Shown: one piece after another, positions 6,500-53,460 of the stretch
Position numbering within the stretch: the first letter of the stretch is position 1
Layout of the letters: every line of letters starts with the position of its first letter
Source: Octopus bimaculoides
Taxonomy: Eukaryota
Assembly: GCF_001194135.2 (NCBI RefSeq)
Contig: NC_068982.1
Coordinates: 103,844,976-103,900,043, forward strand
Reading direction: 5' to 3'
DNA: 55,068 nt
Program-made: the position numbers and the translations under genes
The notes under the pieces: model-generated
The model's input: only the letters and a program-made list of their open reading frames with translations
The model's database searches: none
Told to the model about the DNA's origin: nothing

Positions 6500-7400
6500 C
6501 AGAAGAAATTCAAAACACTTAATCTGTCACACTTATGTAAAAAGATGACATCTTGACGAACCGTTGTTTGAACGATGTCACACTCTATAAAGTAATGACT
6601 TCTATATGTTGAAAGTCACAATCTAAAGGAGCGCACTGTATCTATTGTCATTTTATTCACATAGACGATACATTATAGGAATATATATTAATCTCAGTAC
6701 TTTACTGAAACTATATTTTATAAACATCAAAATAGTTAAAATGCAATTTTCACATCGATGGGATGCGAGCTTAGAACGTAAAGGGAGATAACTTATTACA
6801 GTCCATAATTTTCTCCAACGTTGTAACAATTCAACCACGAACTCCGTATATTCCTTTAGGCTTATTTTAGGGATTTTGAAAAGACGAAAAATTAAGACGA
6901 CTCGGTAGAGTATTAATACATAGCATACAGGGACGTGGCTAATTACAGCGAGACGTTTTATCAAGTTATTAGTTTTTCGACTTAATACAACAATCAAGCA
7001 GTATTTCAGGGGAGATAACTCGGACACAACATTATGTTCAGATGGAAATGACGACCAAATAGCTCGGTACTACTGACTAAAAGCAGGGAACATCGGTTCG
7101 ATGAAGCCCATTGATCGTAGGCACAGACACTAAGGTTAGGTTACGTTAGGAGTGGCTAATATCAACAATTGCATTACGAAAGACAGAGTAATAAATACAG
7201 TACTGTACTTTTAATCAAGCATGCTATCCAATCTGACAGTGTAAAATACCTGTACACTGTAAATATACGCTATAATACAGTAAATTCAAAGTCTGCCTTA
7301 CCATGGATGGTTAAGAAGTGTTGTTGATGTGCCGTGATTTTGTCCGCTGCTTCCGAAATCAGTTAAAGAAAGGTCCATAGTACCAAGGTATGAGTGCACA
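6500..7400. promoter_or_regulatory. CpG-retaining putative bidirectional promoter / first-exon region
   Basis: Visibly more CpG than the flanks. Minus-strand donor ATG|gtaagg at 7302/7301 and plus-strand donor CAAG|gtatga at 7387/7388 lie 85 bp apart. ETS-like CGGAAG motif on the minus strand near 7350. Confidence 0.5.
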
Positions 7401-7614
7401 TACATAGATATACATATACAGGTCATACACTAACGACTAAAACAAGTCCTCCCTCCCTAGAATGTATTCCTTCTAAAATTGTCTCCCTGCTCCTATGTTT
7501 ACAGCAGTCACTGACTTGCAACATTTTAAAGGAAAGATTAGCTGTCTCAAAACGAATAATCTTAGAGTGCCTGCAAAAGCTATAGGTTCTGCCCCTACCT
7601 CAGATCTAGCAAAA

Positions 7615-7649
<35 letters not shown>

Positions 7650-7699
7650 AATCAACATACATTTATATTATTTGTTTCAGGTAAAAATCAATATACACA

Positions 7700-9001
7700 A
7701 TGCAGTCTATATATTTTATGCTGCTTCTTCTTATCACATTTTCAGGTAAGTATATTTCTATGAATTAATGAATCATATTAATAAGCTAATTGCTAAAGAG
7801 GTGCTGACAAAGTTAAAGTAAGCAGAGTGAAGCCAATTGGCACAGATTGACTTTGAACTCTGTTGCACATGGACACTAAGTTATAACATTCTCGCTCACT
7901 TCTGTTGTTTTATGATAGTGCTTGGAAGCAAAGTGTGAAGAGTGTAGTCACTTCAAAAAGAAGATCGGGTTTCAGATGAGCAGGGTCTCCTTGATTATGT
8001 TAATAAGGGTCATAAGAGGTGACAAATTGTAGGTCTATGGCTAATACTCGAAAGGAACAAGATTTCAAGATGCTGAGGAAATCCAAGAAAATGTTACAAG
8101 GCAGCTGCTTGCTATCCCAAAAACGGAGTTCTGGGAATGCTTCCATCAATGGAAACAACGCTGGTATGGCTTCAGAAGGGAACTACTAAATGCCAAGTTG
8201 ATGTGTGGTATAGTTTTTTTTTTTATGTAGTACCTGTCCTAATGGAGGCGCAATGGCCCAGTGGTTAGGGCAGCGCACTCGCGGTTTCGATTCCCAGACC
8301 GGGCCTTGTGAGTGTTTATTGAGCGAAAACACCTAAAGCTCCACGAGGCTCAGGCAGGGGATGGTGGCGAACTCTGCTGTACTCTTTCGCCACAACTTTC
8401 TCTCACTCTTACTTCCTGTTTCTGTTGTGCCTGTAATTCAAAGGGTCAGCCTTGTCACACTGTGTCACGCTGAATCTCCCCGAGACCTACGTTAAGGGTA
8501 CACGAGCAGGCTGTTCCATTGATCGGATCAACTGGAACCCTCGACGTCGTAAGCGACGGAGTGCCAACAACCTGTCCTAATACTTTCTGATCAGACCTCG
8601 TATATATATATGTGTGCGTGCGCGCGTGTTTGTCTATGTGTGTGTATGTGTGTGTGTGTGTTTTGAGTGTAAGTCAGTAAAACCATTATATTGGTAAATA
8701 TACAGACTTGTGAAATTTAAACAAAAGTGAAGAATATGCATTAATTTCTTGTTTTGAGAAAAAATCTTTTGTTTTTACAGTATTTTGCAATGGTTTGAAA
8801 AAGGAGACGACCAAGAAAAAAGGGAAACAACTCAATGACGACCCACTTAAATTAATTTTGGCTCAAAATAACTGGAAGGAATTAGCTTCAAAATTTATTT
8901 CGGACGTTGCCTCTAACATAGATATGAACAAAGTAATGAAGATGGTAAAAAGTTTCAATGTATCATCCTTTCTGAAGGACTTTCAGAAAAAAGAGTTATA
9001 A
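7700..9001 (+). CDS. Small secretory-pathway protein, 88 aa, spliced (7700-7745 + 8781-9001)
   Basis: Acceptor tttgtttcag (7680), ATG 7700, donor TCAG|gtaagt (7746), acceptor ttttgtttttacag (8780). The phase-1 join gives MQSIYFMLLLLITFSVFCNG-LKKETTKKKGKQLNDDPLKLILAQNNWKELASKFISDVASNIDMNKVMKMVKSFNVSSFLKDFQKKEL*. AATAAA at 9073 and 9096; non-coding upstream exon ends at 7387. Confidence 0.8.
7794..8602 (+). mobile_element. Internally deleted mariner derivative in intron, interrupted by a SINE
   Basis: Right TIR ...tactttctgatcagacctcgTA. Transposase scraps (IRGDKL; EFWECFHQWKQRW). Left TIR is degenerate. Confidence 0.55.
8244..8569 (+). mobile_element. tRNA-derived SINE family B with 12-bp TSD
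   Basis: A-box TGGCCCAGTGG, B-box GGTTTCGATTCC, (CAA) tail. TSD acctgtcctaat at 8232-8243 and 8570-8581. Confidence 0.9.
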
Positions 9002-11349
9002 TTTTAAATGACGCAATGATAAAATGATATTCTTATGGTTGTAGGTCTAACTAAAGAACTGTTGTAAGAATGAATAAATTTTGAAGTATTTTTGTAATAA
9101 ACGCAACATGTATATGATAATATGATATGTCATTAACATATTTCAACATTATTCCTATATGTCACACTTTGGACACTGTTTATAATTTAATCTGTATACT
9201 AGTCTATGGTTAATAAACAGGCAGGTCTGTGTGGTTAAGAAGTTTCCTTCCAAACCATATAGTTTTGGGTACTACGTGGAACCTTGTTAGTGTCTTCTAG
9301 TATAGCTCTGGATTAACCAAATAACAGTGAAATCTATGTCAAATTACAACCCACTGTTTAGAATACAGTGGATAATATAATTCCAGATAAGTAAAAAAAT
9401 GTAAAGACCCTCTTTGTTCATGAATGACCAAGGGATTGCACCTAGAAAGTTACCCTCCAAGACGCAAGTCTGGGCAAGGTTTATGGATGACTAGCAGTTG
9501 CCCATGCATACCAGCCTCCCCCTCTCCATACCACTGGTATTAACCAAGTGAAAGACAAAGGCTGATACAGCTTGGCACCAGTGATGTCGCAACTCATTTC
9601 TGCAGCCGAATGAACTGGAGCAATGTGAAAGAAAGTGTTTTGCTGAAGAACACAACACATAGCACAGTATGGCTTCAAATTTTGGTACCGGGCCAGTAAT
9701 TTTTGAGGAGAAGGTAAGTCTATTACATCAACCCCAGTGTTCAACTGGTACTTATTTTATCAACCCTGAAGATGAAAGTTAACCTCAGTGGAATTCAGAC
9801 TCAGAATGTAAAGATAAACAAAATACCACCAAGCATTTCGTCCAGCATGCTAATAGTTCTGTTAACTCACTGCCTTAATGAGGATCTTATTGTATACAGT
9901 GCTCGCGTGCATTTATGCAAACATTACATTGATATAAACAGTGTTTTTTTTCAATATTGCTCTAATAAAATCAGGCTGTCTATAGGTTGGAAATACAAGA
10001 AGTATGTTGAAGCCTATGCTTCTCTGAGAATGATTAATAAAACTTAAATAAGCCTGGAGTTGTCTCCCATACTTACTGAAATAATCAAAATATTAACCAT
10101 TGCATTGATGTTGTCTTTTCCTAACTCCATTAAGTATTTTTAATTTCTGTCCAACCCATGCCAGTTTGGAAAATAAATGTTAAATGATGATGATGATGAT
10201 GAGATGGTGGTGGTGGTGGTGGTGGTGGTGGTGGTGGCATATTTGGTGTTCACTGGATTAAATATTAACTATTGCTTTTCATGTTGATGGCATCTCTAAC
10301 CTCAATGCATATTTTCAAGAATGTGAGAGCTCACATGGCTGCAGTCAACAGAAGAAATCTAGTTTTTAATATCAGTGAGGATTGTCGTCATAATTTTCAT
10401 TAGACTGCTGTCTACACAAGATCTCACTGAAACATTTATGTACTCATTGGTTGTAATGACTATTTGCCCATATGGTTCCTCTACAAGGGTCCATTTTAAT
10501 CAAGCAACTTCAAAACCATGGTTATAGTTAGTGAAAGAAAAATGCCAGATCAAATAATTACATTTACAGGCTATTGGAGGCACTGTCAAAGATACGCAGA
10601 AGATACAAGACGTTTAGTATGTGATATTATCCACTTATGCAATTACATACATGCTTGCATCTTGTATGTGTGTGCATGTTTGCATGTATATGTGTATACA
10701 TGTATACATGTGAGCATGTATGTATTTGCACATTAATACATGTGTGCAAGCAAGCAAGCATGCATACATACATACATACATAAGTGCATGCACACGCAGA
10801 CACACATGCACACGTGCATACATACATACATACATACATACAAACATACATACATACATAGAATGCATTAGATCAGTCTTCCAATAAATCTTTGCAATTT
10901 GTTGTCTACTAAGTGTATGATTACATAAAACGTTGCACAAAATTCTAGTATACCATAATAAAATAAAGCAAAAAAGAAATTTTCCTGAATTTTGTTATGA
11001 AAAATATTTAATAATTTTTATCTATTATATTTGAAACATATTTAGACAACATATGTAATTTATATATATTTTATAAAACAATATCTGGCATTTACACTGT
11101 CTCCAGTGTGTCCACTAAGTACCATCCAAAATATATAATTGATAAGTCATGAAGAACACAAGGTTGATTGATGTATCATTGTTATATCTGGCCGAGGTGA
11201 GTGGCAATGTATGAATTTTCACATAATGTTTGAGTAGATTCTTAATTCACATCAGTTGTTCTTCAGTGGAGACAGTCAGAGCTGCAATAAAAGAAAATTA
11301 TTGCTATTGTAAATATTTTACTGTAATAAAAATAAATAACTAAATCATA

Positions 11350-11506
11350 GGTGTGGGCATGGCTGTGTGGTGCGAAGCTTGCTTCTCAACCACATGATTC
11401 TAGGTTCAGTCCCACTGTGCGGCACTATTCTGCTATAGCTTCGAGCTGACCAAAGCCTTTTAAGTAGATTTGGTAGACAGAAACTGAAAGAAGCATGCTG
11501 TATGTA
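11350..11506 (+). mobile_element. SINE family A, 5' half
   Basis: Head ggctgtgtgg...gttcagtcccac matches 36001 onward. Ends at an N gap. Confidence 0.75.
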
Positions 11507-11653
11507 NNNNNNNNNNNNNNNNNNNNNNNNNNNNNNNNNNNNNNNNNNNNNNNNNNNNNNNNNNNNNNNNNNNNNNNNNNNNNNNNNNNNNNNNNNNNNN
11601 NNNNNNGATCTTATAGATGTTTAATGTTTGTAAATATTTGTCTAGTGCAGGGG

Positions 11654-12046
11654 TTACTCTTTTACTTGTTTCAGTCATTTGACTGCGGCCATGCTGGAGC
11701 ACCTCATTTAGTCGAGAAAATCGACCCCAGGACTTATTCTTTGTAAGCCTAGTACTTTATTGTATTGGTCTCTTTTTGACAAACCGCTAGGTTACGGGGA
11801 CGTAAACACACCAGCATCGGTTGTCAAGCGATGGTGGGGGGATAAACACAGACACACAAACACACATACATATATATATACATATATACGACGGGCTTCT
11901 TTCAGTTTCCATCTACCAAATCCACTCACAAGGCTTTGGTCGGCCCGAGGCTATAGTAGAAGACACTTGTCCAAGGTGCCATGCAGTGGGACTGAACCCG
12001 GAATCATGTGGTTGGTAAGCAAGCTACTTACCACACAGCCACTCCT
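11654..12046 (-). mobile_element. SINE family A, complete
   Basis: Near-identical to copies at 22363, 23004, 36001 and 53038. Internal (TA/CA) microsatellite. Confidence 0.9.
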
Positions 12047-12053
12047 ATATACA

Positions 12054-14275: not shown

Positions 14276-14440
14276 NNNNNNNNNNAGAGAGAGAGAGAGA
14301 GTGACTGACAGGCAGACAGACAGATAGATAGATAGATAGATAGATAGATAAGAAGTAACATGGATATTTAACAGAATGTTAACTTGATAAATAAGATAAA
14401 TAGATTGATGAAAAGGTCTAACTTTGTATTCGTTTCAATA

Positions 14441-14551: not shown

Positions 14552-17500
14552 CTGTAAATAATAATAGTACATATCATTTATAATAAAGTTAAACAGAACA
14601 AATTTATCGAAGTTATGTTTGCTGCTAAATCATATTTCCAATTTTTCTTAAACTACTTTGGCATATTATTTGCATATCCATGAAGATGTAATTTGGAGGA
14701 ATGGTGTATGTTGGGAAAAAACTGTGCTACAAGTTGATAGTAGAGAGTATATGAAGTAGTGTCAAGCTAATGAAGAATCTGGTGCAGTGAAGTGGCTCAA
14801 CTAGAACTTCATAAATAAGGAAATCCACAGTAAAGGTCTATCTAAAAGGAGCATGGAAATCAGACATTAAATTGATAGGGAGAGGTGGAGCAATGATGAT
14901 GATGATGGTGTTGTAGCAAACTCATTAGAGGCGGAGAGAGAATGTAAGTTCGTTTGCCCGAACGTGAGAAATTATTGATTTCTCATTGGTTAAAAATTAC
15001 TGCCCATATACAAATTCTGAACTTCATTGAAGAAGTCTTTCACGGGGTTACGGTTCTATGATTCGTGTATGAGTAGTTATAAAAACCCTGATTTTCAGAA
15101 AACTCTCCAGTGATCGTTGGATTGCCACTCGAATCCACAACACTCACTCAAGTGATCGTTGGACCGCCACTCAAATCCACGACACTCACCCTCTTGAGTA
15201 TTGGCTAATATTTATGCCATGTTCAATAGTGTTAATGATGATGATGATGATGATAATGAAGACAATGATGATGACAGTGGTATGGACAAGCATACATTTT
15301 TGATTTTTAACTGTTTATTGGACTCTGTAAATTCAGTAAAACACGTTTAGTAATGTGCTAGTACTAACGTTGACAATAATAATTCTTTATTCTACAGACA
15401 CAAGGCTTGAAATTTATGGAGAGGGGTCAAGTTGTTTACATTGATCCAGTGGTCAACTGTTATTTATGTTATTAATGCCGAAAGGATGAAAAGCAAAGTC
15501 AACCTTGGAGGAATTTAAACTCAGAATGTTAAGCTGGAAAAAATGTTGTTAAGCATTTTGTCCAGCATGCTAATGATTCTGCCAGTTCACCACCTTCATA
15601 ATGATGATAATGATAAAAACAATAACATAACAATTAATAATGATTACTATTGGTGGAGTGGAGGTGCAATGGCCTAGTGGTTAGGGCAGTGGACTCGCGG
15701 CTATAGGATCGTGGTTTCGATTCCCAGACCGGGCATTGTGAGTGTTTATTGAGCAAAAGACACCTAAAGCTCCACGAGGCTCTGGCAGGGGATGGTGGCG
15801 AACCCTGCTGTAATCTTCCACCACAACTTTCTCTCACTCTTACTTCCTGTTTCTATTGTGCCTGTAATTCAAAGGGTCAGCCTTGTCACACTGTGTCACG
15901 CTGAATATCCCTGAGAACTACGTTAAGGGTACACGTGTCTGTGGAGTGCTCAGCCACTTGCACGTTAATTTCACAAGCAGGCTGTTCCGTTGATCGGATC
16001 AACTGGAACCCTCAACATCGTAACCGACAACAACAACAACAACAACTATTGGTGGAAGGTAGAATCGACAGAGTAATCAACTAAATGGTTTGTCGTATTT
16101 AGTTACATCCCTTACAGTTCTAAGTTTGTCTCCTACTGAAGGTGACTTTTCCTTTCATCCTTTTTACTCAATGAAATATGAACCAGTTAAGTAATAAGTT
16201 CAAGTGAATGAAAGGATCCTTCCTCTGAAAATTTGTGGTCTTGTGCAAAGAGTGTGGGCAAAAATGCTTTGCAGTATTTATTCTGGCTATTTATGTTCTA
16301 AGTTCAAATCCCACTGAGGTTAACTTACCTTTTCATACTTTCACCATTATCACCATCATCATCATTCAATGTCTTGTCTGTTGTGGCATTGTTTCTATGG
16401 CTAGATGCCCCTCTGGGTGCTTTTTATGTGTCACCATCACGGTGACAGCACTGACATGGGTACGTTAATGTAGCACTAGCACATGTGCTTTTTAAGTGGC
16501 ACTGGCATCTGATGGGACAAGCCTGACTGTGTGGAAGACAGCGATTTTACTTAGCTTGATATGTCTTATCAAATCACCACATCTCCTGGTCCCTTAAAAT
16601 TTCCTCAGTGAGGCCCAGCATCCAAAGATCCTTTCTCACCATTTTATCTCATGTCTTCCTGGGCTGTTGTTGTTGGCACTCCGTCGCTTATGACGCCGAG
16701 GGTTCCAGTTGATCTGATCAACAGAACAGCCTGCTCATGAAATTAACGTGCAAGTAGCTGAGCACTCCACAGACACATGTACCCTTAACGTAGTTCTCGG
16801 GGATATTCAGCGTGACACAGTGTGACAAGGCTGACCCTTTGAATTACAGGCACAACAGAAACAGGAAGTAAGAGTGAGAGAAAGTTGTGGTGGAAGAGTA
16901 CAGCAGGGTTCGCCACCATCCCCTGCTGGAGTCTTGTGGAGCTTTAGGTATTTTTGCTCAATAAACACTCACAACACCCGGTCTGGGAATCGAAACCGCG
17001 ATCTTATGACCGCGAGTCCGCTGCCCTAACCACTGGGCCATTGCGCCTCCACCTTCCTGGGTACCCTCCACAATTAAAGCTCAGCACTTCTTTACATAGC
17101 TGTCCTCCTGCATACACAATGCAACTGTCCTCATAAAATACCAGTCAAAAATAGAATCAATTCAATTGACTAACCTTTCCCTAAAATTTCTGGTCTTGTG
17201 TCAAAATAAGAGGCAATTAAGGTAGTGGATCGCAAAATCAATATAATGGTGGATTAAATACATGTATTTAATTTTTAGTTCAATTCTTACTTAGTCATCT
17301 TTCTGGGACCATTAAAATAGGTACTACTCTAGTACTGAACTCAATTAAATAGACTATAAATGAAGGTAAGCTGAAAAGTTCATAAGCTGACTATGAAGGA
17401 GTGATGTTAGAGTTGTGAAACTTGGCATTTACTAATCTTAACTTTTCTTATTAATAACTGCATTGTTTCTTTCCATGTAAAGAACACTTCAAAAGTAATT

Positions 17501-20500
17501 CGTAGTAACTTCTCTTGAAAATGGACAAATTTTGGCATCATAGTGTTATCAAGTACTTGGACATTCATGCTGACATGGTTGCTATATTAGGGGAGGATGC
17601 TCCAGTTTTGTCAACAGTGGAAAAGTGAGCAGCTGAATTAAGAGAAACATCAGTCTTGAAGATGACTCAAGGTATGGACGTCCTACAACTGCCACCACCA
17701 AGGAAAACATTGACTGTGTTCACCACAAGGTGATGATGGATAACAGCATTTGACTATAAATCAAATAGTCAATATTATTAGCATATCTCATGAGAGAGTT
17801 GAGAATATTCTGCTTGGTGGGTGCCATGTTTTCTGATACCTGATCAAAAGCACATCAGGTTGATTACATCACAGGTGAAAATCTGACATTGTTTGAGGCA
17901 ACTCCAGCTGGTTTCCTTGAGTTATTCCTAACTCAGAATGAGGGTTGGCTTCATCACTTTGAGTCAGAGACAAAGAGACAATCCATGCAATAGAAATAAA
18001 CCTCCTCACCAACTCCAAAGAAGGCTAAAGTCATGGAAGGTGTTGGCCTCAGTTTTTTGGGGATGCAAAAGGCATTGTGTTTATTGATTATCTTCAAAAG
18101 GGCCACACTATCAATGGAGAGTACTATGGCAATTTTCTGAGGCAGTTACAATGGGCTATCAAGACCAAATGCCTAGGAGAGCTGATGAAAGGGTTTTGTT
18201 TCGTGAGGACAATGCTCCAGCACAAAAATCCTTGCTTTCAATGGCTGTTGTGCATGACTGTGGCTTTGAACTGGCTAACCACCTTCCCTATTTGGCCCCA
18301 TCTGACTATCATCTGTTCCCCAATATGAAAAAACACTTGGCCAAGAAGCAGTATCACAGTGATGATGTCATGTCTGTTATTGATGTCTTTTTTTATCAAC
18401 AAGATGAAAACTTCTTCACTAATGGGATCCAAATACTTCAACGCCAATGGAAGAAATGTGTGGACCACAAGAAAGACTATGTTGAAAAATAAACCTCATT
18501 TGGTCACATCCTATGAGAGTATTTTAGTCAGCCTGTGAACTTTCCAGCTGACCCTTGTACATTGCCCAAAATTCTGGAGATGTTTAACTGTGTTATAAAG
18601 TATTAAGTATGTATTGATACAATTTTTCAAGTAATTGGTAAATGAAATATTGAGACTTAACTGTTCCTTAAATATATAGATTCATTCTTAATTCATTTTG
18701 TGAAGAGAAGCATCACTATATATTAAACTGAAATTTCAAAACTACTTACACATAATTTGACTTGCATAGGCTGCTCTTTGGCAGGAAGATGGTTTGTTAT
18801 CTGGAATTTAAATAAAAAGAAAGAAGAAATCAATAAAGTGTGGCATTTTGTTTCGATAAATTGATTAATTTAATGCTTCCATAACTCAGTAAGAAATTCT
18901 TTGGACATTCTTTGTATATCATAAAAGAAGTAGTACCTCCCTTTTAACACATATGTCATTGGAGGATTTAAGTTCATAATGACAGGTTAAAATACACCTG
19001 AACACCACAGTACTTAATACTAGACACTAGAAATATAAAAAGTAAATGTCCTCAAAATCCATAAAAAAAGAAGTTGTTCATAAGACAAGAAATTAACTCT
19101 GACCACTTCAAAGTGGGTGAAAGATAAATATCTTCTTGGCTAGGACATTAGTTTATGACAGTATACTTTTTGAATATCCTTGGCAAAGATCACCTTGTTG
19201 CAAGAATCTGGACCATCACCCCAGTTACCACTTTCTGTCCTTGGTTTTTCCTACATACATAAACTTGCAGAGATGTTTAGCTTAGGTGGGCATCAACCAC
19301 TTCAATCTCACCTGCCTGAGAGCTTGTAATGGTCCAGGGCTCTGTTCCTAATCTTTTGACTAATGTATTAAGAATAATTAACATTTATAGAATAATAAGC
19401 TCAGGAAATGAAGCATATGAAGTAAAGTGTTCTTTCCTGATATGTCCTGAGATGTGAACTTATGATTTTTCTGTTTTCTTCTACCTTTCTTGTAATATAT
19501 CAAAAGAAAAAAAGAATTGTCGTTTCCCTAAATGCAAATGGATAACTAGATCTTTATAAGTATAAGTCAATCAATACTGCTGAATCTTAACACTTTATAG
19601 GCCAAAGGGAAGCACTAATAACATCAACATTTTGTTCTAAGTGTTTAGAAACTAAATACAGTGGAGAAGTTTCTAGATATTTTACCAGATTCGCAGAAGG
19701 ATTTAAGATCTGAACTCACTATAATAAGATAATGAAATATTTGTCAAATTTGCAATCCTTCTGGACTCAATAGCAATGAAGTGTACCTTAACAACATTCC
19801 TATTAGAGATAGATACATTGAACTGTTGAGAGTTACTTGCTTTTACCATGAACACAATAAGCATTGTGCAATTGATAATGGTATAAGCCATCAACTTGGT
19901 AAATACATTACTGTCCTGTTAAAGGAGCCAGTTACAACAATTAATGAAGAGAGTCAAAGGCTCTTACAAAATACAGAATCTGATATATTCAACACACAAA
20001 TTAACTACCACAGTTTACAATGTTACGGATGAAATAAAGAGAAAAACTTACTTTATATGTTATTCCTGCATGGTGCATCATGCATGACTGTCTTTGTAGA
20101 GTCTGGCGTGTGTACATTTCATTCCTAAGGGCATTGTAGCTATACATCAGAAGAAGAAAGAGAAGTTAGTTGAATTTATTTAACATCAACATATCAACCA
20201 ATACAAATTTAAAATAATATACCAATACATATTTTAAAATAAACAACTCCACCCAATGATCATTATATACAATGCCCTATAAATTCTAGATTCACAGCAT
20301 ACCTAGTGGTATCTATCTCCTCTCTAGCCATTGTTTACTTTTGGCTTCTCTGCAAGCTCTTCTGCCCTTTGACAGATTCTATTTTAAATTCTATTTGGCA
20401 CCCATATACCCTCCTCATGTAATAAATTGGGTAGAGGGTACCAATTTTGTCACCAACCACTTAGCTGTGAATCAGATTGTACTGGGTTACATGCCACAAA

Positions 20501-22527
20501 ATAATCTTTGGTTGGTGTATTGGTCATATATGGGTGGTGAATTCTCTGTCAATTTTAGCAATCAGCACTCATTTTCTCAACCAACTATATTTTTACTTGT
20601 GAAATTAATGTGTTAACAACTGAGTATTCCACAGCTATCTGTACCCTTAACACAATTCTTAGACTGATGCACTCAGCATGACATGATGTTGCAAGGTTCG
20701 ACCTCTGAAATACAGGCACAATTCAGAAAGAGAGAGAGAGAGAAAAGAATCAAATTCAGTTCTGGACTGACACTTTATCTAGTGACTACCAGAGAAGGAA
20801 AGACAAGGTTGATCTCAGTGGGATTTAAACTCAGAGTGAAGGAAGCTGAAGCCAGTATCTTAAGGCAGAGGCTGCTATATGCTACTTAAATTCATTTGGT
20901 GACAATCTTGGATTCTAGAAAGTAGTATATAGAATTCATATCTTTCTAAAGTATATTAGTAATTGTTAGTAAAGTTATTTCAACTAAGAATCAAAACTTG
21001 AGTGCATATTTCACACACCAAGGAATATATTGTAATCCCAAGATACCAATAACAGATAAGTACCAATTCATAATGGTCATACTGGAAATATAATTAAACT
21101 GAAACTTTTGAGCTTAAGAAAATAGTCTCAAGTATACCTATGTTGGAGAATTTGGATCTTTTTCTCATAGAAATTTGTTTTGCTATACCCCATATCCGGT
21201 ACATCAGTGAGTGTACTGAAAAAGAGTATTCAAAAAAGAAATTTTTTGTTATGAATTGTTTAAAATTTCATTACTTTATATTCAATAAAAAATATACTTA
21301 TTATCATTTTATATGAATTTTAACTTGAAACTTTGGTGGAAGAACATGTCCCACAAGACACACACCACAGTTTCAGATGCAATAGAACCTAATCTATCTG
21401 AAGAAACCAGATTGTTTTACTTTGCCATTGTGAACTACTTCTCCATATTGATAGTCTTCAGAAATTGTAAAAGGATGTTGGAATCTTTGTACTGAGACTT
21501 TTATAGAGATGAATAAAGTTGATTGTAAATAAGAATAAATGCAGTAATACCTCAAAAATGCAAACTCTCAGGTGTCATATGTATGTATGTATGTATGTAT
21601 GTATGTGTGGAGGCGCAATGGCCCAGTGGTTAGGGCAGCGGACTCGTGGTCATAGGATCGCAGTTTCGATTCCCAGACCGGGTGTTGTGAGTGTTTATTG
21701 AGCGAAAAACACCTAAAGCTCCACCATCCGGCAGGGGATGGTGGCTGACCCTGCTGTACTCTTTCACCACAACTTTCTCTCACTCATACTTCCTGTTTCT
21801 GTTGTACCTGTAATTCAAAGGGTCAGCCTTGTCACACTCTGTGTCACACTGAATATCCCTGAGAACTACGTTAAGGGTACATGTGTCTGTGGAGTGCTCA
21901 GCCACTTGCACGTTAATTTCATGAGCAGGCTGTTCCGTTGATCGGATCAACTGGAACCCTCGACGTCATAAGCGACGGAGTGCCAACAACAACAAATGTA
22001 TGTATGTATGTATGTATGTATGCATGTATGCATGCATGCACTGAAAGAACAGTTGGAAGTTGATCCAGATCTTTTTTCGAAGGTCATCACTGGTGACAAA
22101 AAGCTGGTGCTACGGAATTTGTAGATGTGAAAGAGGAGGAGAAAAAAAAACAATGGAGGCGTTAAAAGGCATCACCTTGCAAGAGTTCCAGGACTGCTTT
22201 CAAAAGTGGAAAATGCATCTGAATAGTGGAAAATTGCTTCAAATGGAGAAAACTTTGAAGGTGATAAAAGTGTGTAAACATGTAAAACTAAGTGAATAAA
22301 ATAATATTGCAAAATTGTGGTTTCTGTTGGGTACCCCCTTGTATGTATCGATGTATGTATATCTCTTTTACTTGTTTCAGTCATTTGACTGCGGCCATGC
22401 TGGAGCACCACCTTTAGTTGAGCAAATCGACCCCAGGACTTATTCTTTGTCAGCCTAGTACTTATTCTATTGGTCTCTTTTGTCGAACTGCTATCGGTTG
22501 TCAAGCAATGCTAGGGGACAAACACAG

Positions 22528-22566
<39 letters not shown>

Positions 22567-25500
22567 CATATATACGACGGGCTTCTTTCAGTTTCCGTCT
22601 ACCAAATCCACTCACAAGGCTTTGGTCGGCTCGAAGCTATAGCAGAAGACACTTGCCCAAGATGCCACGCAGTGGGACTGAACCCGGAACCATGTGGTTG
22701 GTAAGCAAGCTACTTACCACACAGCCATTATATATAAAAGTAGAATTTTATGCCATCCTGTTGATGAATCCATCTCTTTAAATCTTGCACTTCTAATAAT
22801 CCTTTACTACCCATTACATATAAACTCTTCATTATAAGGTCTGAGTGATTACAGAACTTTCTGTCCATGATTGTATCTTCAATGATACACTAACTGCTAA
22901 TTATTATATTAACCATACCAATGATCACAAACAACCACTCATATTCTCCTAAATTGACAGAACTTCACAATTAACAGTAATGTGAAAAATAAAGAAAACA
23001 ACTCTACTCTTTTATTTGTTTCAGTCATTTGACTGCGGCCATGCTGGAGCACTGCCTTTAGTCGAGTAAATCAACCCCAGGACTTATTCTAGTAAACCTA
23101 GTACTTATTCTATCGGTTTCTTTTGCCGAACCACTAAGTTACGGGGACCTTAACACACCAGCATCGGTTGTCAAGCGATGCTGGGGGGACAAACACAGAC
23201 ATACAAACATATATATATATATACATATATACGATGGGTTTCTTTTAGTTTCCGTCTACCAAATTCACTCACAAGGCTTTGGTTAGCTCGAGGCTATAGT
23301 AGAAGACACTTGCCCAAGGTGCCATGCAGTGGGACTGAACCCAGGACCATGTCATTGGTGAGCAAGCTACTTACCACACAGCTACTCCAAGAAAATTTAA
23401 ATAATTTTTCATGCTAATGAAGTTAAAGAATGAAACGTACCACTCCTTTATAATTTTATATTTTTTTCTTGGTTCAATCATGCGACTTTGTTCCAGGACT
23501 CTAATTTTCCGAAAAAGATCCTTGTTTTGTTCAATAAGCTAAAAATAAAATAAAGTTATTTACTTCGTAAAAATTACTTTTTAATTGCTGGGTCTGAGGG
23601 AAGAAGTGCTTATAGCTTTTGAAATGCCTTCAAGGGATTGGCACAGTTGACATCATTAACATTTTACATAAACTATCACAAGACAACACTTGCATGGAAA
23701 TATAGGGAGAAAGTTAGAGAGTGTCAATGTTCTGAGGATGAAGAATTGGGTTTTATGCATGGTGCAGGGATGTTAAACAAAATATGGTAGATTAGGGGAA
23801 GACGAGAAAAGTGAGCTAAGAGTGACTGAGACTAGCCTAGCCAGCTTGCAGGGAGCAGTGACCATTTATTGTTGTTTGTTGGCACTCTGTCGCTTACGAC
23901 TACGAGGCTTCCAGTTGATCCGATCAACGGAACAGCCTGCTCGTGAGATTAACATGCAAGTGGCTGAGCAGTCCACAGACACGTGTACCCTTAACGTAGT
24001 TCTCAGGGATATTCAGCGTGATACAGAGTGTGACAAGGCTGACCCTTTGAATTACAGGCACAACAGAAACAGGAAGTAAAAGTGAGAGAAAGTTGTGGTG
24101 GAAGAGTACAGCAGGGTTCGCCACCATCCCCTGCCGGAGCCTCATGGAGCTTTAGGTGTTTTCGCTCAATAAACACTCACAACGCCTGGTTTGGGAATCG
24201 AAACCGCGATCTTATGACCGCGAGTCCGCTGCCCTAACCACTGGGCCATTGCGCCTCCATGACCATTTATAGTAGCAGTAGAAAAGACAGAGAAAGGTGA
24301 CAACATGTATGTAGGCCAGTGGCTGGAGCATATCTTAGATGTGGATAGAATTATATTGAAAAGGAGATAAAACAGAAAGTTATTCAATGGGTTATTAACT
24401 TCATTTGGGTATGTTTTGTTTGAATTTATAGCAAAACACTATTTTGATTGGTTAAAATTCTCTGGCTAACTTCAATTTCTATCTCTTGTTACATATTAGT
24501 GAAATAGTGAAGAAATATCAAGAGAAGGAGAATAAAGAAATGGATAAATTGGGAACACAAAGGGATAAACACTGTTTATTAAAAGTATGCACAGAATGGT
24601 CTAAGGATTGAAAAGGGAGGTAGGGAGGGAGAGGGGGGAGAAGAGAGAGGCAAGGAGGAGAAGGGGAGAGAAAGAGAGAGTAGAGAGAGCGAGAGAGGGG
24701 AGAGAGAGAGAAAGAGAGGGAGATAGAGAAAGAGAGGGAGAGAGAGAGGGAGAGAGAGAAAGAGAAAGAGAGGGAGAGAGAGAAAGAGAAAGAGAGGGAG
24801 AGAGAAAGAGTGCAAGAAAGAAAGAGTGAGAGAGAGAAAGAAAGGGGATGTAGGAGGGGGAGGGAGAGGTATGTGGGAGGAGAGGGAGGGAGAGGTATGT
24901 GGGAGGAGAGGGAGGGAGATATGGGAAGAGGAGGTTACTTAGCCCGTCTGTAATGCTTTCATGTGATTAGTTGAAGGGAAAGGTGAAGAGCGAAAAAAAG
25001 GTGAGAGAAAAAGAGGGTAAGGCAAAGAGTGAGAGGGAAAGCGGGAGAGTGTTGTGTATTAGGTCTATAAAATTGTGCATAAAGTATATAAAGTGTATAT
25101 ATATATATAAAGTGCATTATGTAGTCATCATATTCCAATTTCCTTCACTTTTCAATGATTAGCAGATGAGTGACTATCTTTTGATACAGACAGAACACAG
25201 GCTATGCTATCAGGTTTTTTGGATTAAGTTTTCAGAAATAATCTTATATTTCGTATGTGTATTTGGTGTGCAAGATTCTTGATGTGGATACGTGTATTGA
25301 AAGAAATACAATTAAACCTTGGGAGAGGCATTATGCCGGTAATAAACACACGCACTGGTTCAGTCCTTTATTAATTTATAAACAGTATATAGTTTTTTGT
25401 TAAATCATTTCATTGCACTCTTGCAATCTATCAGCATAATGCCTCTCCCAAGGTTTAATTGAATAATCTTATAAGTTTACCATTAATTTTGTGAAATATT

Positions 25501-28500
25501 CATGGGTCGGTCCCACTAGTTATTATAAATATACTTATTTTTGGTATGTAAAAATGTGTAAACATCATAGAATGGTAGAAAACTCCCATTTTCATTTCTC
25601 AGTAGAAGCATTGCATTTATTTCCCTAACTTCCAAATCAGACAAGAACATATCTATTACAGGTACCAGGCCTGAAATTTTGGGGAAAGGAATAATCAATT
25701 GTATTGGTACCAATACTTGACCAGTACTCTGTTTTATTATCATTAAGAATTTGAAAGGCACAATTGACCTTAATGAGATTCAAACCTGAAACAAACAGCC
25801 AGAAGAAATACTGTAAGGCATTTTCTCCAACATTCTAAGAATTTTGTCATTCCATCTCTTGGCAAATTAAATAAACAATGATCTCAAATTTTGGCACAAA
25901 CTAGCAATTTTAGAGAGAGGGGTTTAGTCAATTACATAGACCCCTGTGCTGAACTGATACCTATTTTATCAACCCTGAAAGGACAAAAGGCAAAGACTAC
26001 CTTGGTGGAATTCAAAGTCAAAACGTAAAGAGCTAAAAGAAATGTTATTAACATTGTTGTTGGAAATTTCTGAATGAAATGCTACTAATATTTCTGATGT
26101 GTTAACATTTCTGACAGCTTGCTGCTCTGAATTAAATGAATAGTGATTTCATTATACACAAACCTAAATCCAAAGGCTTGGATGAATATCCCCTCAGTTC
26201 TGGAGCTGGCAGGATTATCCAAAAGTGATGGGAAGAGACCAGATGGGAAGAGACCAGATGGAAAGAAACCAGATTATCCCTGGATAATAGGGAGGTGCTT
26301 CATCTGGGACACCAAGGTCTGTGACTCTTTTGTTCCTTCCCTTATCCTGGATACTGTGGTAAATGGGAGGGTCACTGCTTCCATAGCCAAATGAAACAAA
26401 ACTCTGTAGTATTGGGACCTGGCAGTGAACTATCTCTTCGAGCCTGAGGCGTTTGAGAAATTCAGAAGGACTGGGCCATTAATGGTGAAGTTCTTGTCAT
26501 CGTTGGCAACTCCCCTCACTAAGGTGTCAGATGATGCCTGTGAGGGTGCTTAGCTTTTCCAATGCCTTAGCCTCACCATTGCTCATGGTAATGCTGTGAA
26601 CATGCTGGCTTGCTTCAGTAGGCTCCGTCAAACCTTGTGGTGTGTGACCATCTGAAACTCCTGGTGCTGCATTGATGTTTTTTCTTTCTTTTCTTTCGCC
26701 CCATTTTTTTGTCTTTCTTTTGTATCATATATGTATCATATACATGTGTGTTATATATGTAATAATACTTACATTATTACTTATTGTCAAACAGACATTA
26801 CAAACTAAAAAAAAAATTATAAAATAATATAATTATGTATAATATAATTGATACGGAATCCCCATCATGTTTATGAAAATATAATTGATACTGAATCCCC
26901 ACCAAGTTTAACCCTACATCTTCATTGAAATACCTTATCCATGTCATTTTGAAGTTTTAGGTTCTGCATTTGTAAAGCCATTTTTTCCTTGTTAAATTTC
27001 TCCATAAATTCAATTTTCTTTTGAAATGCCTGTAAACGAAATTTACTCTTTTATATTTCACTCTGAAAAATCATTTTTAAACATACTTCTTCAATTGGTT
27101 GTACATACTGATATGGGCTAAACGGTATACAAAATCAGAACTTTACTATCATTGTAACACATTATATAATACTACCTATGCCTGATACCTGATTTGTTTC
27201 CCACATTCCAAATCTTTTACTTTTTTTACATTCTCTACACTGTGTGTCTTCTAGTGTCAACTTATTGCTTTTTTCTATTGCAGCAGGTGTCATCCAACTA
27301 TAATACAGTTGAATAATTTCATTTGAAAACACTAGCTTAGCAACTTTACAGGGTTGGATCTTTTCAAATGTTGAATAGTAGTTATTTTGAAGAAAGAAAG
27401 GGATATATTCTGTTAATGTATCATATGCTTACAATGTGATCCCATACTAAATATATATCTTAATAAAACATATATATATCATCATCATCATCATCATCAT
27501 CATCGTTTAACGTCCGCTTTCCATGCTAGCATGGGCTGGACGATTTGACTGAGAACTGGTGAAACCGGATGGCAACACCAGGCTCCAATCTAATTTGGCA
27601 GAGTTTCTACAGCTGGATGCCCTTCCTAACGCCAACCACTCAGAGAGNNNNNNNNNNAATTTGGCAGAGTTTCTACAGCTGGATGCCCTTCCTAACGCCA
27701 ACCACTCAGAGAGTGTAGTGGGTGCTTTTACGTGACACCTGCACGAAGGCCAGTCAGGTGGTACTGGCAACGGCCACGCTCAAAATGGTGTCTTTTATGT
27801 GCCACCCGCACAAAAGCCAGTCCAAGGGCACTGGCAATGATCTCGCTTGAAAATCCTATGAAGGCCAGTCAGGTGGTACTAGCAACGGTCACGCTCAAAA
27901 TGGTGCATCTTATGTGCCACCTGCACAAGAGCCAGTCCAGGGGCACTGGCAACGATCTCACTTGGCTTGCCGGGTCTTCTCACGCACAGCACATTTCCAA
28001 AGGTCTCGGAAAAGTAGTCATCTCCTCGGTGAGGCCCAATGTTCGAAGGCCTTGCCTCACCACCTCAGCCCAGGTCTTCCTACCTCTTCTATGGGTTCCC
28101 TCAACTGTTAGGGTGTGGCACTTTTTCACGCAGCTATCCTCATCCATTCTCACCACATGTCCATACCAGCACAATCGTCTCTCTTGCACACTACAACTGA
28201 TGCTTCTTATGTTCAGCTTTTCTCTCAAGATACTTACACTCTGACGGGTATGCACACTGACATTACACANNNNNNNNNNNNNNNNNNNNNNNNNNNNNNN
28301 NNNNNNNNNNNNNNNNNNNNNNNNNNNNNNNNNNNNNNNNNNNNNNNNNNNNNNNNNNNNNNNNNNNNNNNNNNNNNNNNNNNNNNNNNNNNNNNNNNNN
28401 NNNNNNNNNNNNNNNNNNNNNNNNNNNNNNNNNNNNNNNNNNNNNNNNNNNNNNNNNNNNNNNNNNNNNNNNNNNNNNNNNNNNNNNNNNNNNNNNNNNN

Positions 28501-28862
28501 NNNNNNNNNNNNNNNNNNNNNNNNNNNNNNNNNNNNNNNNNNNNNNNNNNNNNNNNNNNNNNNNNNNNNNNNNNNNNNNNNNNNNNNNNNNNNNNNNNNN
28601 NNNNNNNNNNNNNNNNNNNNNNNNNNNNNNNNNNNNNNNNNNNNNNNNNNNNNNNNNNNNNNNNNNNNNNNNNNNNNNNNNNNNNNNNNNNNNNNNNNNN
28701 NNNNNNNNNNNNNNNNNNNNNNNNNNNNNNNNNNNNNNNNNNNNNNNNNNNNNNNNNNNNNNNNNNNNNNNNNNNNNNNNNNNNNNNNNNNNNNNNNNNN
28801 NNNNNNNNNNNNNNNNNNNNNNNNNNNNNNNNNNNNNNNNNNNNNNNNNNNNNNNNNNNNNN

Positions 28863-34800: not shown

Positions 34801-36197
34801 TGCATGCATGTATGTATGTATAGCATGCATGCATGTATGTATGTATAGCATGCATGCATATGTGTGACTGTTCCCTTTGCTATCTATTGAAACCAAAGAG
34901 AATATATCCACAATAAAAATTACCATTTCTGTGTCTGAGAGGAACTCTTTGAATGGCGTGCCACTTCGGCTTTTCTATAAAATAAACAGAAACAAAAAAA
35001 TTTTAGATTGAAACAACATAGTAAGTCTTACTTTTACTGATCATAGCAAAATACTTTAAAATTTTAATTGCAATAACAATATTTCTATGACAATAAAAGC
35101 TAATGTAAATTAGATTGAAGGATGGAAGTAACAAAGAAATGAATGCAAGTAGGCTGGAAAAAGGAGAGAAGGTATTTGCAATGAATGAGAAAAAGAGAGA
35201 GAGAGAGAGAGCGTTGTAGGTTTTTATCAATGTATATATACGTCATGGGTTCTAGTTTGTTTAACCCATTACCTACCAGTGATCTCATATGAGATCACTT
35301 AAAAATAACAAATTTCGTAATTATCTGTCAATATTTACACATATCTAACCTTTTTGCTATATCTACTAGGTATATTTCTCTGATATTCAAATGAGGTTTG
35401 CTAATTTTTCACCCAATATCTCGCTTATTTCTATTTAAAATGTTATTTCGAAATGTTATTTTGAAATGTTATTTTGATCCTTCCAGCGTGTTTCTAAGGC
35501 TGTCTTATGCTAGAAATCAAAGTTTCATAAAAAAATTCCAGTTAATAGAATTATGGGAGGTAATGGGTTAATCTGATTAGAGGGTTACCTGGGTGGAGAT
35601 AGGGTTCTGGAGGTGGATATTGGTGTCATAATAGAGAACATCCCAGAGGATACCACCAAACACAATAATTATCATACCATACAACTCAACAACACCACCC
35701 TCAACTCCTTATCAAATGATAATCTTAGCACCAACTATAATAACAAACCGAACACCGATTCCTCACTAAATAACAATACCGTCATGAGCTCATCTGGAAT
35801 GCCCCTTACAAATCTATGTAGCTTCAGACATTCAACCTCCTGTCCTTTAGATAACCACTGTCTCACTAAAAACATAGTTTATAAGTGCACAGTATCAACT
35901 AACAACTGTAACTACATTTACATCGGCTCATGTAGCACCACCTTCAAAGTTAGGGTGAGCAATCACTACTCTAGCTTCAAATCCCAAATACAATCTAACA
36001 GGCGCAGGAGTGGTTGTGTGGTAAGTAGCTTGCTTACCAATTACATGGTTCCAGGTTCATTCCCACTGCATGGCAACTTAGGCAGGTGTCTTCTACTATA
36101 GCCTCAGACCAACCAAAGCCTTGTGAGTGGCTTTGCTAGATGAAACTGAAAGAAGCCTGTATATATATATATGTATATATATATGTATATATATATG

Positions 36198-39200: not shown

Positions 39201-42200
39201 TCATACATACACACACACATGCACATATATAAAGATGTATGCATGTGTGTGTGTAAGTATGGAAGTATGTGTGTTTATGTGTGTGTCTATATGTTTGTAT
39301 GTGGAGGCGCAATGGATTTTACCACTTCTGAGGTTCCACTTGCCATGAAGCATATGTAGCCCAGATTTTTTCTACTCCATTCCATAAATCTTATATTCTT
39401 TTTTGCACACTCAACAACCCTCGTTGCCTACTGTGGNNNNNNNNNNNNNNNNNNNNNNNNNNNNNNNNNNNNNNNNNNNNNNNNNNNNNNNNNNNNNNNN
39501 NNNNNNNNNNNNNNNNNNNNNNNNNNNNNNNNNNNNNNNNNNNNNNNNNNNNNNNNNNNNNAATAAAACACTATTTGTATCCAGTGGTTAGGGCAGCGGA
39601 CTCGCAGTCATAGGATCGCGGTTTCGATTTCCAGACCGGGCCTTGTGAGTGTTTATTGAGCGAAAACACCTAAAGCTCCATGAGGCTCCGGCAGGGGATG
39701 GTGGCGAACCCTGCTGTACTCTTTCACCACAACTTTCTCTCACTCTTTCTTCCTGTTTCTGTTGTACCTGTAATTCAAAGGGTCAGCCTTGTCACACTGT
39801 GTCACGCTGAATATCCCTGAGAACTACGTTAAGGGTACACGTGTCTGTGGAGTGCTCAGCCACTTGCTCGTTAATTTCACGAGCAGGCTGTTCCGTTGAT
39901 CGGATCAACTGGAACCCTTGACGTCGTAAGCGACAGAGTGCCAACTATATGTTTGTGTGTATAATGAATGAAAATTGCATCCAAATGTGTTCATTAGCAG
40001 ATATACTCATCCCTGCACCACTTAAAGTTTAATAGGAATAAGAGCAAGTAATAAAGGAATAAATAATGTCTGGTCATTGAGCGACCAATGGTTCAGATCC
40101 ATGAAGACCACAGCTTCATGGACGACTCCTCAGACTCTTGTCTGGAGACAAATTTTACTCTTCATCTCTTGGAGGTGGAAAGTTATGATTATTGGTAAAA
40201 TGGTAATCAGAGAATAAAAGGTCTGGCGATATTCTCTGATGACCATTTGACCAATGACTGTAACAACTTTCCACCTCCAAGAGGTGAAGAGTAAAATTTG
40301 TGTTTGGACTAGAATCATCCACGAGGCTGCAGCCTTCATGAATGCGAAACCATTGATCACTCTATGATCAGACTTTAACTTCATTGCTTTAATACTTAAC
40401 TGCTCTATACTTTAGAGTGTGTTTCTTATTCAGTTATATGATACATTGACAAAATATATATATATATACATACGAACAGCCATGCTACATGGCAATGAAA
40501 TATGGGCTGTGACTGCTGCGGACATGTGTAACCTTGCAAGGAATGAAGCCAGTATGCTCCAATGGATGAGTAATGTCAGTGTGCATACTCGACAGAGTGT
40601 AAGTACCTTGAGAGAAAAGTTGAACCTAAGAAGCATCAGTTGTGGTGTGCAAGAGAGACAATTGCGCTGGTATGGTCACATGGCAAGAATGGATGAGGAT
40701 AGCTGTGTGAAAAAGTGCCACACCCTAGCGGTTGAGGGAACCTGTGGAAGGGGCAGACCCAGGAAGACCTGGGATGAGGTAGTGAAGCCTGACCTCCGAA
40801 CATTAGGCCTCACCAAAGCAATGACTTCTGACCGAGACCTTCGGAAATATGCTGTGCGTGAGAAGACCCGGCAAGCCAAGTGAGACCAAAATCCAAGGCC
40901 TCTGCCAGGGATGTAGCCAACCCACTTATTCTATATGTGATGGTGTATTAATGTATGGTCAGAGGGTGGTCATACCACAGACATTACAGAAGAGAATGCA
41001 TGCTAAGAGTCCCATGTGGTACACCCAGGCATCTCTAGAATGAAAGCGTTGATGTGAAGTTTTGTATACTAGTCAAGTATGGACAGGGAAGTTGAAAACC
41101 TGGTAAAAGGCTGCAGAATATGCATGCTGGTAGCGAAACTACCAACTACAAAATATGAGCCTTGGCTGGAAGTGGAAATACCATGGTCTCGATTGCATAT
41201 TGATTTTGCAGGCTGAATAAATGGATATTATTACTTTATAGTAGTGGACAGCTATGCAAAATGACCTGAGGTTGTGAGGTGTAAACGACCAACCTCATAT
41301 ACGGTAGTAAACTCTTTACATAAGCTGTTTGCAAGATTTGGTGCACCGGATATAATTGCCTCTGATAACAGAACACAGTTTGTATCCTGTGAGTTTAAAA
41401 GATTTTGCAAGATGTTAATGTTAGAACATAAAATTATAGCACTGTATCACCCAAGATTGAATGGAAAAGCTGATCGATTTATGGACACTTTTAAGAGAGC
41501 TTTGGATGAGGTCATAATCCAACAGTTCTTAAGGGTATACAGGGTAACTCCAAACCCAAATGCACCAGAAGGAAGTTCACCAGCAGAATTAATGTTTGCC
41601 AGAACGGTGAAGTTAGTATTTGATAAGCTTTTACCAGTGAAGAAAATAACATGTGCAAGTAAAGACATGCCAAAATTCTTTAGAATCGGAGTTAAGATAT
41701 ATGTAAAAATGTACAAAAATGGCAAGCAATACTGGGAAAAAGGAAAAATTGTAACATATGTAGGAAGAATGATGTATGGTGTAAGAAGAAGAACTGGAAT
41801 GGAAAAGAGACATAGAAATCAGCTTAAGGAAAGAGTCATACAAAAGGAACCAACAAGAGTAGAAATACTGATGGACTGGCTATATGACACTTTTCAGGTT
41901 CCGACACTGTTACAGGAAGTTGAAACCACACATACAAGGAAAAGGAAGAATAGTAAATTCCTAAAAGTAGACTTTAAAAAGAAAAGATATTGAGTATATA
42001 TAAAAAAAAGGAGGAGGGTGAATAAAGGAAATTGATTGTTAAATAAAATAATTAAAAGGTGAGACGTTGTATAGTGAAACTGTATACCCCTTCCCAATAA
42101 AAAGTGGTAGGAGTCACCCATTATAAATAGACCAGTAGCTGGTTTTCAAGAGAGGATCAAGAGTTGAAAGTCAACAGTTCTAGTCAGTGTCTTGTGGAGT

Positions 42201-48200: not shown

Positions 48201-48948
48201 CCATGTTAGACAAGGTTGCTGAAAAAAAGCATTTCAATATAAATATACTACGATAACCAAAGGTACGGTACCAGGAGCAATTCAAATTACCAGAATGCAA
48301 TTCCAGTTATTCAGAAAAAATAGAAACAAAATCCATAATGTAAACTAACTGTGACAAATGACAATCAAATCAACTTCACTGTCACAGTACTTCTGGTGGC
48401 TCAACAGTTGGTAAATAAACATACAATAGAATATTGCTAGTAAAGATAGACCACAGGATTCAAATAGTAACATTTATATCAGAGAAAAATCCCCACAAAA
48501 TAATAACATAGAACAGAACTGAACTTGTTATGACAGCCACAGAAAAAAAGAGTTCCTCTTCAATGAATATGAAATATAATGTGATTTCAAGGTTATGGTG
48601 ATAAGTCTTTCCCTTGTAAAAATTTTGATATATTTTTATGAGAAATATGATAACCTTGTTAATATGTTAGATTTAGCAGTTTTATATCTATCACAATACA
48701 TGCATACATATAATACATATATACAAATATATATATGCATGTGTATTTGTGTGGATATTTGCTTCTTAAACCTAGATCAACATGTCCAAGGTAATTACCT
48801 TTACAAATTCTGTTGGCTCATCTTTGCGAGATTTAGGAGTTGGGCTCCTCTGCTGTAAAATTAAATATATAAAAACAGAAACATTATTGCATTAAATTAA
48901 TAAATTGCAGTACAAATCACTTCTAATTTGTTAAAAGAACTCATAAAT

Positions 48949-53037: not shown

Positions 53038-53262
53038 CTTACTCTTTTACTCTTTTATTTGTTTCAGTCATTTGACTGCGGCCATGTTGGAGCACCGCCT
53101 TTAGTCGAGCAAATCAACCCCGGGACTTATTCTTTGTAAGCCTAGTACTTATTCGATCGGTCTCTTTTGCCGAACCGCTAAGTGACGGAGACATAAACAC
53201 ACCAGCATCGGTTGTCAAGCAATGCTAGGGGAACAAACACACACACACACAAACACACACAC

Positions 53263-53301
<39 letters not shown>

Positions 53302-53460
53302 TACGACGGGCTTCTTTCAGTTTCTGCCTACCAAATCTACTCACAAGGCTTTGGTCGGCCCGAGGCTATAGTAGAAGACACTTGCCCAAGGTTTCACGGA
53401 GTGGGACTGAACCCGGAACCATGTGATTGATAAGCAAGCTACTTACCACACAGCCACTCA
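53038..53460 (-). mobile_element. SINE family A, complete
   Basis: Close to family consensus. Confidence 0.9.

Follow-up and report, generated by a model that had tools for sequence, protein, structure and literature searches.

Does a short lysine-rich open reading frame (ORF) in a repeat-laden stretch of the genome of Octopus bimaculoides belong to a functional gene and, if so, where in the cell would a protein that ends in KKEL be found? The stretch analysed here (the window) comprises 55,068 nucleotides (nt) of contig NC_068982.1 in RefSeq assembly GCF_001194135.2 (positions 103,844,976 to 103,900,043 of the forward strand), and an initial annotation, made from its letters alone, had proposed at 7330-9110 a spliced gene for an orphan-like, cationic protein of 88 amino acids (aa) that is secreted or retained in the endoplasmic reticulum (ER). 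Because Argonauta hians has an orthologue of the same architecture, alignment between the two loci is, shared repeats aside, confined to coding sequence, and the ratio of non-synonymous to synonymous substitution rates (dN/dS) lies below 1, we conclude on this comparative evidence that the gene is real, protein-coding and under purifying selection. Its product may be a small glycoprotein of the ER lumen, known only from octopods, that the KDEL receptor retrieves, a reading on which our own judgement is evenly balanced.

Structure of the gene and its product

The gene has two coding exons, probably preceded by a non-coding leader exon, and its features are as follows:

7330..7387, + strand: putative non-coding first exon (5' untranslated region, UTR), based on consensus splice sites only, its position a guess
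7681..7745, + strand: first coding exon; its 46 coding nt start with the ATG at 7700, after a 19-nt leader, and cover residues 1-15 and the first base of codon 16
7746..8780, + strand: phase-1 intron of 1035 nt, with a repeat resembling a short interspersed nuclear element (SINE) at 8243-8571 and a (GT)n-rich stretch at about 8606-8665
8781..9001, + strand: last coding exon segment, encoding residues 16-88 and the TAA stop (8999-9001)
Sub-features of 8781..9001, + strand: predicted c-region and cleavage site 8781-8794; basic linker, residues 21-32, 8795-8830; predicted helical domain; NVS 8957-8965; KKEL 8987-8998
9002..9110, + strand: 3' UTR, with AATAAA at 9073-9078 and 9096-9101, read from the sequence

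The first coding exon is bounded by the acceptor TTTCAG/G and the donor CAG/GTAAGT, which scores 6/6 (here and below the slash marks an exon boundary or a cleaved bond), and the acceptor of the last exon, just 5' of 8781, reads TTTTTACAG/T. Joined in phase, the 46 coding nt and 8781-8998 yield the 88-aa product; here the initial annotation was right, in that its coordinates hold, the sites conform to consensus and the same two-coding-exon structure recurs in Argonauta. The headless fragment that it had set at 8795-9001 needs different limits, the actual open stretch around the last exon being 8714-8998 (95 codons). An A stands at -3 of the ATG at 7700, which is the first usable start because a TAA lies in frame at 7682-7684. 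The candidate leader exon has after 7387 a donor, AAG/GTATGA, that scores 4/6, and shows no counterpart or similarity in the upstream region of the Argonauta gene; nevertheless, a 5'-UTR intron is plausible, as a strong acceptor precedes the ATG by 19-25 nt in both species.

The product starts MQSIYFMLLLLITFSVFCNGLKKETT, ends FQKKEL and reads in full MQSIYFMLLLLITFSVFCNGLKKETTKKKGKQLNDDPLKLILAQNNWKELASKFISDVASNIDMNKVMKMVKSFNVSSFLKDFQKKEL. Recomputation returned the composition first reported for the 68 residues after G20, namely 15 Lys, 8 Asp or Glu, a net charge of +7 and no Cys, and likewise the NVS sequon, which occupies residues 75-77. In both species the N-terminus consists of M-x-S followed by 15-16 uncharged residues, a run that falls short of the usual membrane span, and small residues occupy -3 and -1 of two candidate cleavage sites: VFC/NG in octopus and ALS/NG in Argonauta, or CNG/L and SNG/L respectively (after C18 or G20 in octopus). 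By inspection, the n/h/c layout and the -3/-1 rule of signal peptides are satisfied in both proteins, and the charge of +5 that follows the segment points the opposite way. The signal peptide was said to sit on an exon of its own; this is true of its n- and h-regions, which exon 7681-7745 encodes, and untrue of residues 16-20 and of both cleavage sites, which belong to the last exon. Residues 21-32 carry a net +5 in both species despite differing in sequence (LKKETTKKKGKQ vs LKKRTPKSSKQA), and the helical part of about 50 aa that follows is near neutral, at +2 in octopus and -1 in Argonauta. AlphaFold models built on the two-sequence alignment leave the basic stretch disordered and place helices at 37-42, 44-61, 64-73 and 76-86, with a mean predicted local distance difference test score (pLDDT) of 60.8 for the full-length run and 72.4 for the mature-only run (73-86 over the helices). 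The C-terminal half, described at first as amphipathic-looking, is so to a modest degree only, its hydrophobic moment being at most 0.45.

Conservation in Argonauta hians

An exhaustive phmmer search covering 1.84 billion representative proteins recovered a single full-length relative, the A. hians hypothetical protein Ahia01_000768700 (GAB1604872.1; 87 aa, 59% identity, E=2.6e-22). A second match, to a 2491-aa repeat protein, was discarded as spurious, a short stretch matching the hydrophobic-plus-Lys segment. Comparison of the window with the genomic locus of the Argonauta protein (L001) revealed that: 1) the first coding segment of the Argonauta gene also has 46 nt, ends TTTTCAG/GTAAG and is followed by a phase-1 intron at the same codon as in octopus, with a length of 365 nt as against 1035 nt. 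2) A stop lies in frame just 5' of the Argonauta ATG, and the strong acceptor about 25 nt 5' of it. 3) Exon 7681-7745 is 79% identical in nucleotides to L001 9997-10087 and the last exon 70% identical to L001 10395-10632; all other segments common to the window and L001 are repeats, and the introns, the UTRs and the proposed leader exon do not align between them. 4) The single indel between the two coding sequences is one in-frame codon, and the differences at codon positions 1, 2 and 3 number 26, 14 and 36. 5) The dN/dS ratio amounts to 0.31 for the whole coding sequence and to 0.26 for the mature part, with about 0.9-1.2 synonymous substitutions per site (dS), and the excess of synonymous over non-synonymous change is significant (Fisher p=1.3e-4). 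6) The coding frame alone is open in both species, the other two frames containing 4-10 stops in each. The Argonauta gene has AATAAA signals of its own after the stop, in a 3' UTR that is not conserved with that of octopus. Hence the frame, on whose persistence in relatives the initial annotation had staked its proposal, and the x-x-E-L ending are both conserved in A. hians, and we regard GAB1604872.1 as the orthologue, with the same exon structure, signal-peptide-like start, basic stretch, sequon and KKEL. Synteny is not shown by the Argonauta neighbours: a gene for a proteasome AAA-ATPase stands upstream at a distance of over 10 kb, a 181-aa call follows downstream, and neither has a counterpart in the window.

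Conservation is unevenly spread along the protein. The N-terminal 20 residues are 70% identical, with nine of nine identities in their core MLLLLITFS, as compared to 54% for the mature part, in which identity is 42% over residues 37-62 and 69% over residues 63-88. The last 11 residues, KKEL included, are identical at nine positions and form the best-conserved part of the mature protein. The sequon is kept despite changes at two of its positions (NVS in octopus, NLT in Argonauta), and the net mature charge is not, falling from +7 to +4. The KK pairs, once put forward as processing sites, fare poorly in the comparison: K22K23 and the terminal KK are the only ones kept, and KKK27-29 is replaced by KSS in Argonauta. 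Conservation around the first coding exon (7696-7784 vs L001 9997-10087) was seen to reach about 40 nt into the intron, with a dS of about 0.43 as against about 1.2 for the last exon, both from small numbers; splicing constraints on an exon of 65 nt may be the reason.

Might the ORF and its splice sites nevertheless be products of chance, the Argonauta model an ab initio artefact, and neither part of a functional gene? In the window 124 stretches stay open for 70 codons or more, making ORF length alone insignificant, and the protein is absent from the annotated collections searched, Argonauta excepted. Moreover, the A. hians genes were annotated from a mixture of ab initio, RNA-seq and homology evidence (PMC12682272), and therefore the Argonauta gene model alone is not proof of transcription. 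However, chance alone would hardly keep the frame, start, stop, intron position and intron phase, and confine the indel to a whole codon, at this level of synonymous divergence and between flanks that do not align, nor would it hold dN/dS so far below 1. All 124 open stretches were also scanned for a comparable gene model, in which a phase-compatible ATG mini-exon with a hydrophobic core lies no more than 3 kb upstream and is joined through a donor and an acceptor, and none of the 123 others qualified. The splice thresholds of the scan were this gene model's own scores, which the model passes by construction, combined with a fixed hydrophobicity cutoff; once the donor threshold was relaxed, the qualifying stretches, this gene included, rose to 3 and then to 8. 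We consider an origin by chance very improbable.

A family without recognised relatives

A word-indexed protein search with the 88-aa query gave no match, and with the Argonauta protein or the two-sequence profile it returned the Argonauta protein alone. As the octopus protein is missing from the collection searched, it appears to be unannotated there. The best Pfam match, XisH (E=0.05; 14.2 bits vs a cutoff of 25), arose with one of the two members and is not significant. PDB sequence searches run to E values of up to 10 gave nothing below E=0.3, just non-significant opsin matches, and Foldseek found 0 matches in the PDB for both AlphaFold models. We found no paralogues, tandem ones included, in the window or L001, and literature searches on KKEL gave nothing informative. 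The initial annotation had recognised no family, and the Pfam, PDB sequence and Foldseek searches bear it out. Its term orphan-like is apt insofar as the protein is lineage-restricted and misleading insofar as it is not species-specific, given the clear orthologue in another octopod superfamily. Judged by these searches, the two proteins constitute a new, lineage-restricted family of small proteins, found so far only in octopods. A conserved small gene is thus missing from the protein collections searched, where its only annotated relative is the Argonauta 'hypothetical protein', and short two-exon secretory genes are evidently still missed in cephalopod annotations.

Predicted residence in the endoplasmic reticulum

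The combination of a conserved sequon, KKEL at the C-terminus and a signal-peptide-like start suggests that an ER-lumenal glycoprotein is the most coherent reading of the family. Under it, an N-terminal signal peptide of 18-20 residues would direct the precursor into the ER and be cut off after C18 or G20. The mature chain of 68-70 aa would then comprise the disordered basic stretch (+5 in 12 residues) and a near-neutral domain of about 50 residues with three to four helices, probably N-glycosylated at Asn75. The KDEL receptor would bind the C-terminal K-K-E-L in the cis-Golgi, and vesicles coated with COPI would return the protein to the ER, resulting in lumenal residence. KKEL agrees with K-x-E-L, where x is any residue except Pro, at the extreme C-terminus of both proteins, a match at the level of sequence only. 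In the reporter experiments of Raykhel et al. 2007 (PMC2140024), all AKXEL variants were placed on a soluble reporter in HeLa cells, position -3 accepted every residue except Pro, and the variants formed a continuum of efficiencies. This reporter work (PMC2140024), together with the conservation of KKEL in Argonauta, makes a small ER-resident protein the best fit among the candidates initially listed.

Several soluble ER residents in Table I of the same paper (PMC2140024), ERp27 (KVEL), AGR2 (KTEL) and MSRB3 (KAEL), resemble the octopus protein in combining a signal peptide with a K-x-E-L ending whose -3 residue falls outside [DENQ]. All of them are expected to share one mechanism, in which the KDEL receptor brings them back from the Golgi. 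Unlike these proteins, the octopus protein, known here from sequence alone, is far smaller, has Lys at -3 and contains no thioredoxin or other known domain, and it has no kinship with them in sequence or fold.

MANF and CDNF are small helical proteins of the ER lumen with weak KDEL-like tails (RTDL and KTEL), conserved disulfides and release upon ER stress. The octopus protein would be similar to them in being small, helical and soluble, in its non-canonical retrieval tail and perhaps in leaky retention, and yet it is not a member of their family: it has no Cys, is about half their size and has no significant PDB sequence match. As for its biochemical role, we can offer only a speculative guess, namely that it acts early in the secretory pathway as a small partner-binding or escort factor, perhaps with leaky retention. 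If ER residence holds, the protein would rank among the smallest KDEL-type residents, provide a natural case of Lys at -3 and add a lineage-restricted component to the secretory pathway of octopods. We consider this a tidy and modest result: an orphan-family gene with a plausible localisation that follows from a known principle.

Several points weigh against the lumenal reading. KKEL does not satisfy PROSITE pattern PS00014 ([KRHQSA]-[DENQ]-E-L), as was recognised from the start: -4, -2 and -1 fit, and Lys at -3 lies outside [DENQ]. Confidence in the AlphaFold models, which match nothing, is low to moderate, and with two sequences only the conservation of KKEL and the sequon is statistically weak. 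The charge of +5 directly after the hydrophobic segment, as against 0 to +1 before it, favours the opposite orientation by the charge-difference rule. In addition, the reporter scan used human receptors (PMC2140024).

The main rival to the lumenal reading takes up the orientation suggested by these flanking charges, which are distributed alike in both species. It posits a type III single-pass ER membrane protein in which the N-terminal segment is an uncleaved reverse signal-anchor, the basic stretch keeps the C-terminal side, helical domain included, in the cytosol and KKEL is a KKXX signal bound by COPI. The charge-difference rule is reportedly due to Hartmann in 1989, and the KKXX rule is said to go back to Jackson, Nilsson and Peterson in 1990. 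The latter (Lys at -3 and at -4 or -5) is satisfied exactly by K85 and K86, both conserved, just as in dilysine ER membrane proteins retrieved by COPI. Moreover, the invariance of MLLLLITFS and the greater identity of the N-terminal 20 residues than of the mature part would be unusual for a cleaved signal. However, KKXX proteins are membrane proteins with a cytosolic C-terminus, whereas the only hydrophobic segment here is N-terminal, is uncharged over just 15-16 residues, ends in a classic small-residue c-region and resembles a signal peptide. A simple-sum insertion energy over 19 residues is estimated at +0.2 kcal/mol in octopus and +1.4 kcal/mol in Argonauta. Further, in the cytosol the conserved N-x-S/T sequon would have no meaning, and a KKXX signal does not need the conserved E and L. 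Taken together we regard a membrane protein of this kind as unlikely. Because both the lumenal and the reverse-anchor topologies predict ER residence, residence itself, whichever the topology, is firmer than the topology, and we consider it fairly probable. Another possibility that we entertain, and think decidedly unlikely, is an octopod-restricted, possibly cephalopod-born, family of proteins of about 70 residues, with a KKEL that either retrieval system could recognise, the KDEL receptor as K-x-E-L if the domain is lumenal and COPI as K-K-x-x if it is cytosolic; the conserved basic tail and the helical domain would then confer a lineage-specific function in the early secretory pathway, such as the escort of cephalopod-specific cargo or that of a stress-released factor.

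If KKEL were ineffective in octopods, or trimmed off, the product could instead be a secreted small basic protein of saliva, mucus, antimicrobial defence or the like. A signal-peptide-like N-terminus, small size, lack of Cys and a Lys-rich mature chain (+7 and +4) all accord with secretion, as do the departure of KKEL from the PROSITE pattern and the graded efficiencies among the variants in the reporter scan cited above (PMC2140024). However, secretion leaves the best-conserved C-terminal 11 residues, KKEL included, unexplained, the dN/dS of 0.26-0.31 gives no hint of the rapid change that typifies immune or venom peptides, and tandem paralogues are lacking in the window and L001. Nor does the distribution of charge, confined to the 12-residue N-terminal stretch and followed by a helical part of +2 or -1 with a low hydrophobic moment, resemble that of amphipathic cationic peptides. 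Thus, we deem secretion rather unlikely, and the antimicrobial or salivary cationic peptide of the initial annotation is abandoned: its +5 falls in the predicted disordered residues 21-32, its helical part is close to neutral and its total charge drops between the species. A neuropeptide or prohormone precursor cut at KK or KKR sites would agree with a signal peptide followed by several dibasic or tribasic sites, including an LKKR after the signal in Argonauta. These sites are not conserved between octopus and Argonauta (KKE vs KKR; KKK vs KSS), there is no Gly-dibasic amidation site (G-[KR][KR]) and no repeated peptide copy, and what is conserved is predicted to be a folded-looking helical domain. 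The non-conservation of the cleavage sites led us to reject this reading, which strikes us as extremely doubtful.

Repeats and transposon remnants in the window

The AT-rich window (about 36% G+C), with its many interspersed repeats and its assembly gaps, has the look of animal nuclear DNA; tRNA (ARAGORN) and Rfam scans of its whole length gave no matches. Seven runs of N (11507-11606, 14276-14285, 27648-27657, 28270-28862, 39437-39561, 47699-47910 and 54281-54290) mark the gaps and leave the gene at 7330-9110 untouched. The SINE-like repeat of its intron is about 330-385 nt long, has a tRNA-like head (ggcgcaatggcccagtggttagggc...ggtttcgattccc), on which ARAGORN and Rfam make no call, and is present in six copies:

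8243-8571 (the intron copy)
15659-16028
16669-17051
21608-21990
23876-24260
39581-39945

Identity to the intron copy is about 80% for the other five, which are 91-94% identical to each other.

A decayed retrotransposon integrase lies at 41013-41993 (+ strand), with stops upstream of 41274 and a match to Pfam rve (E=7e-7) that is below the cutoff. Its counterpart at L001 18597-19442 is 54% identical, and the 181-aa call downstream of the Argonauta gene overlaps transposon-like sequence. Fragments of a retroelement ORF tail, which have no Pfam match, occur at 40419-40883 (+), 27956-28269 (-) and about 53499-53654 of the window and at 1684-2084, 11337-11480 and 19833-20238 of L001. A 113-aa ORF at 18151-18492 (+) has no Pfam match at E<=0.01 and resembles, by eye, the C-terminal region of a mariner-type transposase. 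Towards its end, in the last 14 kb, the window contains segments duplicated at 90-97% identity (41857-43051 vs 47080-48314; 46165-46892 vs 49048-49753; 50573-51275 vs 54376-55067) and broken by the N gap at 47699-47910; these may represent a recent local duplication or an assembly artefact. Finally, a second short interspersed repeat is found at 11654-12051, 22363-22736, 23005-23388, 53047-53459 and about 36052-36157 of the window and at L001 3568-3691, with 81-85% identity over about 90 nt, and because it is common to the octopus and A. hians genomes we consider it an old octopod repeat.

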